A stretch of DNA of 64,000 bases. Source: Botryllus schlosseri (lineage: Eukaryota). A program made the translations under genes and the position numbers. The notes beneath the pieces are model-generated. The model did not search any database, was not told the origin of the DNA, and was given only the letters and a program-made list of their open reading frames with translations. Shown here one piece after another: positions 20,347 to 23,300 of this stretch (positions within the stretch are counted from its first letter, which is position 1; every line of letters begins with the position of its first letter). The stretch covers positions 5,952,001-6,016,000 of the forward strand of contig CM119383.1 of NCBI GenBank assembly GCA_051294905.1, read 5' to 3'.

Positions 20347-23300
20347 ATGATGGACATGGAATTGGAGAACATCGTGGCCAATACGGTCTACATTAAAGCT
20401 CGCGAAGGTTAGTATCTCTTTCGTTGAAAGCGTTCTTGGATATTTGCGTAAATGCTATCTTGTCGATGTCTGCAGAATTTTGAACCCGATGTCCGAACAG
20501 AAATTGCAATGATCACAAACGTGCGAGAGGCTAGCTATTGTTGAGTTAATTAGTTGAAATTGTGTAAGCCATGTGTTGAATCGACGGATCAAAGTCCCTT
20601 CATGACCTGTAAATGGGTATACCATAAATTATGACTTGCGAGTGAGAGTTTATGTTGAATGACAGGGTCAAGTGTAGAATACGGCCACCTCGAGAAAGTG
20701 ACCCCTATGACCATCACCGATGAATGCTGCACATGAACATCTCAAAACTCTTAGTGTTTCACATGACATCAATAAATGCTTCCCATGAACACGTCAAATT
20801 TTTTTTTTGCCTGTGTAGAGACGGATATTAGGGTTGGGGGACGGGGGGATATTAGGGTTAGGTTAGGGGCAATATTAGGGTTAGGTTCGGGGGAATATGA
20901 GGGTTAGGTTAGGGGCAATATTAGGGTTAGGTTAGGGGTAATATTAGGGTTGGGGGACGGGGAAATTAGGGTTGGGTTAGGGGATATTAGGGTTAGGTTG
21001 GGGGTAATATTAGGGTTAGGTTAGGGGTCATATTAGGGTTGGGGGACGGGGAAATTAGGGCTGGGTTAGGGGATATTAGGGTTAGGTTAGGGGTAATATT
21101 AGGGCTAGGTTAGGGGTGATATTAGGGTTAGGTTAGGGGTAATATTAGGGTTGGGGGACGGGGAAATTAGGGTTGGGGGACGGGGAAATTAGGGCTGGGT
21201 TAGGGGATATTAGGGTTAGGTTAGGGGTAATATTAGGGCTAGGTTAGGGGTGATATTAGGGTTAGGGGTCACGCCAATCCTAATATTACCCCTAACCTAA
21301 CCCTAATACTGCCCCTAACCCAACCCTAATATTCCCCCTAACCCAACCCTAATATCCCCGTCCCCTAACCTAACCCTAATACCCCCCTACCCCAACCCTA
21401 ATATTACCCCTAATATCCCCGTCCCTCAACCCTAATATTACCCCTAACCTAACCCTAATATCCCCCTCCGCCAACCCTAATATCCCCCCTACCCCAACCC
21501 TAATATCCCCCTACCCCAACCCTAATATCCCCGTCCCCAACCCCAATATCCCCCACCCCCAACCCTAATGTCCACCTTGCTAACCTTAACATCCCCGTAC
21601 CGTAATAAACCCCTAATATCCCCGTCCCTCAACCCTAATATTACCCCTAACCTAACCCTAATATCCCCCTCCGCCAACCCTAATATCCCCCCTACCCCAA
21701 CCCTAATATTCCCCCAACCCTAATATCCCCGTCCCCAACCCCAATATCCCCCACCCCCAACCCTAATGTCCACCTTGCTAACCCTAACATCCCCGTACCG
21801 TAATAACCCCCCCCCCCCCGCCAGCCCTAATATCAGTCTCTCCACACAGGCAAAAACAATTTATTTTGACGTGTTCATGGGAAGCATTCGTTGTTTTAAT
21901 GTGAAACACTGATCGGTAAAGGTCATGGGGATCACTTTTCGCGGTGGCCGTATTCTACACTTGACCCGAATGACACACGTTAGGTAATGGTGACTACATC
22001 AAACAATTAGCACTAATTGCAAATTATCTTGTTCAAAGTCCAAACAATTACTGCTTTTCATCTTGATTTTATAACTAACTGTGATGGGTAAGAATTTAGA
22101 TTCACATGTGATGGATAGGCATCATAAACTGAAACAATTCTGTTGTTATCGTCAATGAATATAATTTCATGGTAGGATCAAATCCGATGCTTGAGATTCA
22201 TTTATAATATTGCTAACAATTTTATTATTTCAATACGCCACAAGACTGCGATACAATGAAAGATAGGCACCCAGGAGGCATCAGGCATGCACATTGAATG
22301 AAAAGTAAAAGAAGATAATATAAAAGTACAGATTGACAGCATACCGGTTTTTCAGCAGTGATAAGCAATTCATTGATTCAAACAGCATCCACCTCGCGTT
22401 ACACATTGAATAAGTGACCCAATGTAGTTCGAGTAGAACATTGCAATATATGGGTTCGATTTTTTTGAAATAGTTTCACCCAACAGATGACTTGTTGAAC
22501 ACGTATCTCTAAGATACTTTTAATGCAATGTGACATGAATTGCCTCTTGGCATTGTGCCTTTACATTTGCATGTTTCACATATTGTACTTTTGGCAATAG
22601 ATGTAACGCACCAAGCCACCAACAACGTGCAGCTAATTATTACCCGCAATGTGTTTTTGCGTTGTCCAGTGACAAGTCTTAAGAATTGTGGTTGTTCTAG
22701 CAAGGTTCGAGTTTTGCAGCATTGTCTGTTGTGTATTAGTCATGTACCTATTTTCATAGTGTAGCAAACGTTCTGGAGTAATCGCACCACTTTTCTCAAC
22801 TGTAGAGATGATCTAAGGAATAGGATATATACCGTACGATAAATCCATCTAGCTAATGAGAACACAGTTTTGTTTGCAGAAGTCAACGAGTAAGGATTGT
22901 GAGCCTAGCAAACATGTAAACGTTTTTGCAGGCATTGTTCTGTAGATGTTCACTAGTCTATCACTTTAACAGGGATATCAAAATTGGGAATTGAATTCCA
23001 TGCGGCTATCGTGGATTAGTTCTTACTTAATTATATCTAACTAGGGATTGATGTGGTGTGCGAGATCTTATCTGTTGTTTCTTTGAATAGTGATTGTGGC
23101 CCGTGTATTGGGGTATTTGTATAGCATACAAAATGTGAACAGGATCCTTGCCAGTAGCGGGATCAGGTCCAGGATTTTGAGGGATTGTGTAAATGTAGCA
23201 GAATTTCAGACATTGGTCTTCAAATTCCTAGCGGCAGCAAAATGGAGTCAAATGGTATCGAGTGTTGTAGTTGTCTCGTGGCCATTTTTTGAAACTTTGA

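Follow-up and report, generated by a model that had tools for sequence, protein, structure and literature searches.

Intron 1 of the GRK gene of the ascidian Botryllus schlosseri contains a 1303-bp non-coding stretch in which G-rich, telomere-like repeats face their own mirror image. This locus raises the question of whether such an arrangement is the scar of a telomere fusion, a product of the assembly or a mobile element, and, in the last case, which transposase moves it. The window (the whole 64-kb stretch of DNA that was analysed) provides the numbering used throughout. Our analysis indicates that the stretch is very probably a recent insertion, still polymorphic, of a non-autonomous cut-and-paste DNA transposon with a foldback build, whose family comprises tens or up to a few hundred members in the ascidian genome.

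Structure of the element and its position in the GRK gene

The features of the locus are as follows.

20347-20407, plus strand: coding part of GRK exon 1 (donor GT at 20408; 19 RNA reads splice away at 20407)
20408-24862, plus strand: GRK intron 1
20657-20664, no strand: left TSD copy, GAATGACA; one copy is kept in the empty allele (joint 20656 to 21968, 8 shared letters)
20665-21967: whole element, 1303 bp, non-coding, foldback build
20665-20689, plus strand: left TIR, GGGTCAAGTGTAGAATACGGCCACC, 25 bp, perfect, with a 5'-GGG start
20665-20822, plus strand: left unique subterminal arm, 158 bp; contains an internal direct repeat of 32 nt and three 12-nt motifs resembling TGYTNCNCATGA
20823-21268, plus strand: G-rich array, ~20 units of 21-24 bp (ATATTAGGGTT core and G-rich tail), 112-bp higher-order period, 6 canonical G4 motifs
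21269-21273 (to 21278), no strand: non-palindromic centre, 5-10 nt
21274-21830, minus strand: C-rich array, i.e. the unit of the G-rich array on the minus strand, 12 canonical C-tract motifs
21831-21967, minus strand: right unique subterminal arm, 137 bp, terminating in the 25-bp TIR
21943-21967, minus strand: right TIR, exact reverse complement of GGGTCAAGTGTAGAATACGGCCACC
21968-21975, no strand: right TSD copy, GAATGACA
24863-24958, plus strand: GRK exon 2, which closes intron 1

The element starts 257 nt into GRK intron 1. It lies in this intron because exon 1 ends at 20407, as seen in the spliced RNA reads, and exon 2 follows only at 24863; the location given in the earlier note is thereby confirmed. 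The GRK gene is not visibly disrupted by the element.

An exact 8-bp direct repeat (TSD) flanks the element on both sides. The 25-bp TIR has only two matches in the 64 kb, even if up to 3 mismatches are allowed (chance expectation 0). Both ends read GGGTC, and the TIR is not extended by flanking bases. Nearly the whole element consists of its two arms, which are imperfect mirror images of each other: the full arms of 606 and 697 nt are 89.6% identical over the aligned positions, with 163 gap columns, and their unique parts (158 vs 137 bp) align except for one 30-nt indel. There is no middle domain. The length of the centre is set by where the last degenerate unit is cut, so that the short centre claimed previously between the arrays is real, while its claimed length of 10 nt becomes 5-10 nt depending on the unit boundaries. 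The longest ORFs in the element have 51 aa and consist of translated repeat only. The perfect 25-bp TIR, the 8-bp TSD, the unique inverted arms and the lack of coding capacity, all claimed in the earlier note, were found in the sequence.

No second copy or fragment of the element could be detected in the window (TIR at up to 3 mismatches; blastn with the arms). No transposase was found there either; the nine ORFs of at least 130 aa gave just one MFS transporter. An Rfam search over 20000-22700 returned no family match. A 22-nt part of the TIR had 0 matches among metagenome contigs, as expected for a collection that is not the Botryllus schlosseri genome.

Telomere-like arrays

The arrays account for ~77% of the element and are internal and degenerate; the tips are unique sequence. 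The G-rich array (46% G) contains 32 TTAGGG vs 3 in the remaining window, and the C-rich array (50% C) contains 27 CCCTAA vs 2. Each arm carries behind its unique terminal part ~20 units of 22-23 bp (e.g., ATATTAGGGTTAGG), in which the ATATTAGGGTT core is near-constant. Compared with (TTAGGG)n, the units show 69-73% identity (z = 11-13). Hence, the telomere-like arrays described before exist as facing G-rich and C-rich arrays, but not as plain TTAGGG, since they are built of 22-23-bp units with a ATATTAGGGTT core. Such a unit resembles a series of three to four eroded telomere repeats (TTAGGG-TTAGG-TTAGGGG-TAATA), and selection on it, if any, would be limited to the core. The repeat of this family may ultimately be of telomeric origin.

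In the C-rich array, a 203-bp segment is duplicated twice at 96% (21406-21811); the left arm does not have it. Because only the right arm has this duplication and the left one shows the 112-bp higher-order period, the two arrays appear to change independently, and they would expand, contract and drift through slippage and unequal exchange. We also considered that the array units are an amplified TIR tip. This was rejected, as neither the first 40 nt nor the whole arm aligned locally with either unit type any better than with shuffles (p = 0.24 to 0.99). The 23-bp unit is not significantly like the TIR tip (p = 0.24), and the idea of an array of amplified transposase sites therefore finds no sequence support here.

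The insertion is polymorphic and belongs to a multi-copy family

Other samples carry the site in a precisely empty state. In X2, a 1171-nt contig joins 20003-20656 directly to 21968-22256, and in X6 a 578-nt contig joins 20379-20656 to 21968-22267. Furthermore, a contig of X1 has 22 nt across the empty joint, and two reads of X23 (RNA) contain the empty junction. All these joints have the 8 shared letters. In this bulk RNA run (6% read), the few element reads carried variants of other copies. The precise empty site in other samples means that the insertion is polymorphic and clean, and a telomere-fusion scar at this locus is refuted. The presence/absence check proposed in the earlier note revealed other individuals with the empty allele.

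Only in X1 does the left-flank contig end exactly at 20664; it shares 30 nt (k-1) with the empty-junction contig. Such a graph break is consistent with occupied and empty alleles parting at this point, i.e. with possible heterozygosity. The occupied flank-TIR junction is absent from the short-read contigs listed, so that the occupied allele is represented by the assembly and by the graph break of X1.

The same arms and arrays occur elsewhere in hundreds of contigs from three runs. Summed over contigs, which is not equivalent to true copy number, the depth of the left arm was 3792-4432 in X1 (flank, 83) and 2368-3213 in X2 (flank, 78.5), and that of the right arm 11,224 (X1) and 15,904 (X2). 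The unique arms thus have ~12-200x the flank depth, and the left arm 30-53x. Another copy is seen in an X6 contig (record 18), in which 30 foreign letters precede a match that begins exactly at 20665. In many contigs of other copies, ~21852 is linked to one or another position of the arrays, with different sequence in between. Arm depth and the differing array lengths joined to the same arm identify a multi-copy family in which the arrays are a family trait. Together with the empty site, this bears out the claims that the stretch is mobile and was inserted cleanly.

Classification, transposase and rival explanations

Arms that make up almost the whole element, short tandem subrepeats behind unique ends, a TSD with an empty site, and dispersed copies of variable arm length place the element in the foldback class. 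This build is already a described kind, and its novelty was overrated in the earlier note; the element in itself is of an ordinary kind. Foldback builds arose independently in several superfamilies and have long TIRs with multiple transposase sites (PMC4079207, PMC3169594). The 8-bp TSD is compatible with more than one superfamily, hAT and P among them, and is a marginal value for Mutator/foldback families.

In a passage of PMC8101967 that cites Feschotte 2004, the Merlin superfamily (IS1595-related) is characterized by conserved terminal 5'-GG, a TIR of 24-462 bp and a TSD of 8-9 bp. The present element has a 25-bp TIR starting with GGG and an 8-bp TSD, one copy of which is found in the empty allele. 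As these are the features by which Merlin is defined, we tentatively regard a Merlin/IS1595-type transposase as the likeliest source of mobility. A difference is that no DDE_Tnp_IS1595 gene is linked to the TIR here or present in the window. Since no master element that combines this TIR with a transposase came to light, the superfamily call relies on one TSD and the terminal bases.

The terminal motif of hAT elements is YARNG (CAG/TAG-type ends), and their target preference is nTnnnnAn. If the element were a non-autonomous derivative of hAT, P or another superfamily with 8-bp TSDs (Zisupton, Novosib), with arms extended by tandem repeats, the TSD would have the right length. However, the GGGTC at both ends is not YARNG, as the earlier note had recognized in calling the terminus unlike hAT, and GAATGACA misfits the target preference. 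The P superfamily includes Galileo as a foldback form (PMC4079207), but no feature points specifically to P or to Zisupton. Overall, this derivation seems unlikely.

Somewhat less probable still is that the same non-autonomous foldback build is moved by a Mutator-type (Foldback/NOF/Rehavkus) transposase. G-rich termini are common among MULEs. Mutator is the superfamily of most foldback elements described so far (PMC4079207), and the TSDs of Tm1 and Tetris are 8-10 bp (PMC4079207, PMC3169594). Nevertheless, the 8 bp found here (one copy measured) deviate from the 9-bp mode of FB, Tm1 and Rehavkus. The earlier statement that the transposase is unknown (Merlin, MULE/Foldback or other) still stands, with literature-backed structural support gained for the Merlin option.

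An assembly fold-back artefact in the intron, i.e. a chimeric palindromic read, is highly improbable. Palindromes are indeed a known long-read artefact, and the short-read contigs of X1, X2 and X6 as well as RNA directly show the empty allele only. But exact TIRs enclosed by an exact 8-bp TSD do not arise from an artefact, the same arms and arrays recur elsewhere in hundreds of contigs, and the X1 graph branches exactly at the insertion point. The arms differ by the 30-nt indel, the 203-bp duplication and ~10% substitutions, and these duplications and indels argue against a fold-back as well. Finally, the G-strand arrays do face each other like two fused telomeres, and their units resemble (TTAGGG)n far beyond chance. 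Even so, an origin as the relic of two telomeres fused head to head, or as interstitial telomeric sequence left by repair, has a negligible probability: the gene is intact and the intron small, the empty allele is precise, TIR and TSD are present, many copies are dispersed, and the repeat unit has 22-23 bp in place of hexamers.

For the foldback transposon that we favour, a transposase encoded elsewhere would bind the TIR and perhaps also the subterminal CATGA-type motifs, excise the element and reinsert it with an 8-bp staggered cut.

Predicted structures and possible consequences

On the sense strand, intron 1 of GRK contains a G-rich and then a C-rich stretch, which is predicted to form a ~500-bp hairpin, G-quadruplexes or a cruciform. 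The modelled RNA fold of the element has a minimum free energy of -840 kcal/mol vs -364 +/- 12 kcal/mol for shuffles, and 506 of the 516 predicted pairs are cross-arm pairs; the modelled DNA fold reaches -458 kcal/mol. The hairpin potential suggested before is thus strong as far as folding models go. Canonical G4 and C-tract motifs (6 + 12 in the element vs 1 in the other 62.6 kb) bear out the G4/i-motif potential at the level of motif density. Cruciform extrusion in vivo, processing of the GRK pre-mRNA hairpin by ADAR or into small RNAs, and telomere healing, all suggested in the earlier note, are predictions.

Effects of the arrays on telomere proteins are a prediction. The ATATTAGGGTT(A) core contains TTAGGGTTA, the site type of Myb/TRF-class telomere proteins. 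It might serve as a working docking site, either for the transposase of the family itself, whose binding would then have become specific for telomere repeats, or for recruited host telomere-binding proteins; we consider this improbable. If it were true, each transposition would place into genes a mirrored array of G-quadruplex motifs and ~40 sites for telomere proteins, and the arrays could be chromatin boundaries, replication obstacles or seeds of new telomeres after breakage.

The population evidence identifies this copy as a clean, recent insertion, and the read evidence identifies the telomere-like arrays as a trait of the family rather than the cargo of one copy. The family appears to be active currently or to have been so recently, scattering mirrored G-rich/C-rich arrays of 0.4-0.6 kb into introns. 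It therefore offers a natural system for the effects of hairpin RNA, G4 and cruciforms on transcription and splicing, for possible telomere-protein binding at interstitial sites supplied by a TE in a chordate whose telomeres are TTAGGG, and for the question of which transposase moves foldback elements with an 8-bp TSD.

Comparison with known systems

The telomere-bearing elements (TBEs) of Oxytricha are a cut-and-paste family with the host telomere-type repeat in its inverted ends. They have coding capacity, belong to Tc1/mariner and bear short perfect telomere repeats at the outermost ends. The Botryllus element shares the telomere-type repeat in inverted ends and differs by its unique tips, its internal degenerate arrays and its non-coding nature.

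MITEs with hitch-hiking tandem repeats (Xenopus Xstir, MITE-like elements of oyster and other bivalves) are similarly non-autonomous and have TIRs and copy-variable internal repeats that are able to seed satellites (PMC6947457). They possess one direct array between the TIRs, whereas here two mirrored arrays form the arms.

In architecture, the element corresponds to the foldback transposons FB, Tetris and Galileo of Drosophila and Tm1 of Meloidogyne. In these, too, short unique termini are followed by long inverted arms made of short tandem repeats, a middle domain is small or lacking, most copies are non-coding and arm length varies from copy to copy; their TSDs are 7-10 bp, and they act as a source of minisatellite/satellite sequence (PMC4079207, PMC3169594). 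In open-access full text, we found no description of telomere-like foldback arms, of ascidian foldback elements or of the family of this element. The Botryllus element differs from FB, Tetris, Galileo and Tm1 in its telomere-like unit (TTAGGG-TTAGG-TTAGGGG with the ATATTAGGGTT core), in its TSD of 8 bp vs the usual 9, and in its ascidian host.

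Insertion in the first intron of GRK

The element, a non-coding foldback-type transposon of 1303 bp (20665-21967), lies in intron 1 of a GRK gene, where the earlier note had placed it. Nineteen reads of the bulk RNA run X23 depart from the genome exactly at 20407, and their continuation matches from 24863 on, in an exon opened by cag/GCGGTGGCAGT that reads on from exon 1 in the protein translation. Together, the two exons encode the N-terminal end of a kinase of the GRK4/5/6 type. The element starts 257 nt into the intron, with its G-rich array on the sense strand.

Features of the locus (window positions, forward strand; element sequence read over 20400-22250)
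20407: coding end of GRK exon 1, followed by gttagt
20408-24862: GRK intron 1
20657-20664: left copy of the target-site duplication (TSD), GAATGACA, immediately outside the element
20665-20689: left terminal inverted repeat (TIR), GGGTCAAGTGTAGAATACGGCCACC
20665-20822: left unique inverted arm, extending inward with the TIR included
20823-21268: G-rich array (46% G, 3% C, 32 TTAGGG)
21274-21830: C-rich array (50% C, 3% G, 27 CCCTAA)
21831-21967: right unique inverted arm, extending inward with the TIR included
21943-21967: right TIR, exact reverse complement of GGGTCAAGTGTAGAATACGGCCACC
21968-21975: right copy of the TSD, GAATGACA, immediately outside the element
24863-24958: GRK exon 2, followed by gtaatg

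The same 19 RNA reads carry nine extra letters, TGTCCTCAG, ahead of GCGGTGG, where the window has tgtcctcaacag/GCGGTGG (20407 and 24850-24863). The extra letters may stem from an alternative acceptor that keeps the frame, although the splice-site dinucleotide it requires is not seen in the window, or from an allele of the RNA sample with a 3-nt indel. Elsewhere in the window, an uninterrupted ORF of 498 aa (1985-3481, plus strand) matches Pfam MFS_1 (E = 1e-32), the domain of the Major Facilitator Superfamily; it is intron-free and unusually long for this gene-dense animal window.

Ends of the element and the empty site

A pattern search of the 64-kb window, which is free of N stretches, allowing up to 3 mismatches matched the 25-bp TIR only at the two element ends (0 matches in 100 shuffles), and the bases outside the 8-bp TSD copies prolong neither the inverted nor the direct repeat. 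The unique arms align well apart from a 30-nt stretch present in the left arm only, which is one copy of a 32-nt direct repeat internal to that arm. No ORF in the element exceeds 51 aa, and those present are translations of the repeats. The palindromic mobile element without coding capacity that the earlier note had described from TIR and TSD is thus confirmed as an observation, and its interpretation is partly supported.

Contigs of three DNA-type runs (X1, X2, X6) and raw reads of the RNA run X23 were placed on 20000-22600. In X2, which comes from a different sample and study, a contig of 1171 nt spans 20003-20656 and continues unbroken into 21968-22256. In X6, from a third study, a 578-nt contig joins 20379-20656 to 21968-22267, and the 20656/21968 joint is also present in an X1 contig (22 nt over the joint) and in two RNA reads of X23. 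Eight letters at this joint are compatible with either side. The empty allele accordingly has a single GAATGACA, as expected of the pre-insertion site. Furthermore, in X1 only, the left-flank contig ends precisely at 20664 with a 30-nt (k-1) overlap with the empty-junction contig. Where one sample has both alleles, occupied and empty, a de Bruijn graph forks, which breaks the contig and leaves a k-1 overlap. This end is therefore consistent with, though no proof of, heterozygosity of X1 for the insertion; the right flank has no matching break. None of the contigs listed bridges the flank-TIR junction, and the occupied allele follows from the assembly, from the fork in X1 and from the argument that an assembler does not create exact TIRs flanked by an exact TSD. 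The insertion is clean, recent and presence/absence polymorphic, and the polymorphism proposed as a check is now documented.

An assembly fold-back artefact can be rejected, as a chimeric palindromic read would yield near-identical arms: the whole arms here are 89.6% identical at aligned positions, with 163 gap columns. The asymmetry consists of a 203-bp duplication confined to the right and, on the left only, of the 30-nt insert and a higher-order repeat of 112 bp. A telomere fusion or a repair-derived interstitial telomere would come without TIR, TSD, empty allele and dispersed copies, all of which are present.

Telomere-like arrays

The G strand is directed inward from each element end, i.e. 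the arrays are head-to-head as had been proposed, and 5-10 nt divide them at the centre. TTAGGG and CCCTAA occur only 3 and 2 times, respectively, in the other 62.6 kb of the window. Tandem Repeats Finder gave a 23-bp array consensus, ATATTAGGGTTAGGTTAGGGGTA, with a 112-bp higher-order period in the left array, and 22-23-bp units plus a 203-bp segment duplicated at 96% in the right one. Only the core ATATTAGGGTT is nearly constant, and when the arrays are divided at it, two unit types emerge, ATATTAGGGTT-AGGTTAGGGGTA, which can be read as TTAGGG-TTAGG-TTAGGGG plus TAATA, and ATATTAGGGTT-GGGGGACGGGG. The tunicate telomere repeat is TTAGGG. The resemblance of the arrays to (TTAGGG)n is real but decayed, since identity is 73% and 69%, exceeding shuffled arrays by 13 and 11 standard deviations. 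The arrays are telomere-like, not telomeric. The facing TTAGGG-rich and CCCTAA-rich arrays of the earlier note stand, built of decayed 22-23-bp units and not of plain TTAGGG, with a centre of 5-10 nt for its 10-nt spacer.

A multi-copy family

Summed contig depths, which are not copy numbers, were about 83 (X1) and 78.5 (X2) in the flanks, 3792-4432 and 2368-3213 in the left unique arm, 11,224 and 15,904 in the inner bin of the right unique arm (21827-21913), 1,402 and 910 in its terminal, partly flanking bin (21914-22000), and up to 250,000 and 425,000 in parts of the C-rich array. In an X6 contig, 30 foreign letters precede a match that begins precisely at 20665; this contig comes from another copy sharing the terminus. 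In numerous contigs, the right arm's inner edge (about 21852) is linked to different array positions (21487, 21510, 21555, 21724, 21757 and others), with varying intervening letters; these are other copies, with the same arm beside arrays of other lengths and variants. At a few positions in the arms, most of the family has another letter than this copy (e.g., 20702 C>T, 20706 T>C, 21889 C>T). The element is therefore a member of an abundant multi-copy family, and the arrays are a family trait.

The C-rich unit variant CCCTAATATCCCC(C/G)T(A/C)CCCCAA (21392-21739) reaches a summed depth of 1,000-5,000 times the flank, far over the unique arms, so other parts of the genome may also contain the unit as a satellite or in long arrays, as is reported for the foldback element Tetris. 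Some 200 bp downstream of the element lies a dispersed repeat of very high copy number (22175-22348; summed depth about 230,000 versus about 80 in the flanks, two runs), on which RNA reads have many differing loose ends. Partial copies are located at 1442-1498, 18288-18325, 18405-18458 and 47579-47635, and the repeat has no Rfam match.

Predicted structures

As single-stranded RNA, the element is predicted to fold into one long hairpin (-839.6 kcal/mol versus -364 +/- 12 for 20 shuffles), in which 506 of the 516 pairs link one arm to the other; the predicted fold of the single-stranded DNA has -458 kcal/mol. The left array holds 6 canonical four-tract G3+N1-7 motifs (plus strand) and the right one 12 (minus strand), versus 1 in the remaining window. 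The anticipated hairpin and G-quadruplex/i-motif propensities are thus borne out in the models, as potentials only. The two arrays contain 15 and 18 copies of TAGGGTT, versus 1 and 2 elsewhere in the window; telomere-protein binding and telomere seeding by the element are speculation. X23 has the empty allele at this site, its sparse element reads carry variants of other copies, and array reads are almost absent. Every functional consequence of the element, from RNA editing and small RNAs to an effect on GRK, is a prediction.

Class, mobilisation and relation to known elements

With its short unique ends, its arms built of tandem subrepeats, a minimal middle, no coding capacity and copy-to-copy variation, the element has a foldback structure, known from Drosophila FB, Tetris and Galileo and from Meloidogyne Tm1 (PMC4079207, PMC3169594). 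This structure originated independently in several superfamilies, and where there is no coding copy, assignment depends on the TSD (PMC4079207, PMC3169594). For Merlin, PMC8101967, citing Feschotte 2004, gives TIRs of 24-462 bp, a conserved terminal 5'-GG and a TSD of 8 or 9 bp. The element agrees with both TIR and TSD features, having an 8-bp TSD and a 25-bp TIR beginning with 5'-GGG, and we tentatively propose a Merlin-type origin. The IS1595 family, which is related to Merlin, usually has a TSD of 8 bp as well. An origin from hAT, P or another superfamily with 8-bp TSDs would also fit the duplication but is rather unlikely; for hAT, the YARNG terminus is not present, in line with the earlier distinction of the GGG end from hAT ends. 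A Mutator/FB-type origin is likewise rather unlikely. Most described foldback elements are Mutator-type, and their TSDs range over 8-10 bp, usually 9 bp (PMC4079207, PMC3169594); the one 8-bp TSD measured here lies at the edge of this range.

No transposase ORF was found within the 64-kb window, and a TIR scan of metagenome contigs, a collection other than this genome, gave 0 matches. The element is probably mobilised in trans, by a DDE transposase whose staggered cut spans 8 bp. A 12-nt motif (TGYTNCNCATGA-like or TGCTGCACATGA-like) is present in three spaced copies per unique arm (20715-20798 and 21875-21934, spacing 22-30 nt), and these copies are better candidates for subterminal transposase-binding sites than the array units. 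The array unit did not match as a repeated TIR tip (p = 0.24 to 0.99). The two arrays may lengthen and shorten independently via slippage or unequal exchange, and the ATATTAGGGTT core is possibly under selection as a protein site.

A search of open-access full texts found neither ascidian foldback elements nor telomere-like foldback arms, which is weak evidence of absence. Foldback elements are nearest to the element in build, and Merlin is nearest in end features. For a telomere repeat on a transposon, the nearest are the ciliate telomere-bearing elements; these have the repeats at their extreme tips, whereas here they are not at the tips. The ciliate elements are coding Tc1/mariner elements (PMC4724952). 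A further related group is that of MITEs in which tandem repeats hitch-hike (PMC6947457). The kind of element is already known; the telomere-like unit is an unusual composition, not a demonstrated difference in mechanism.
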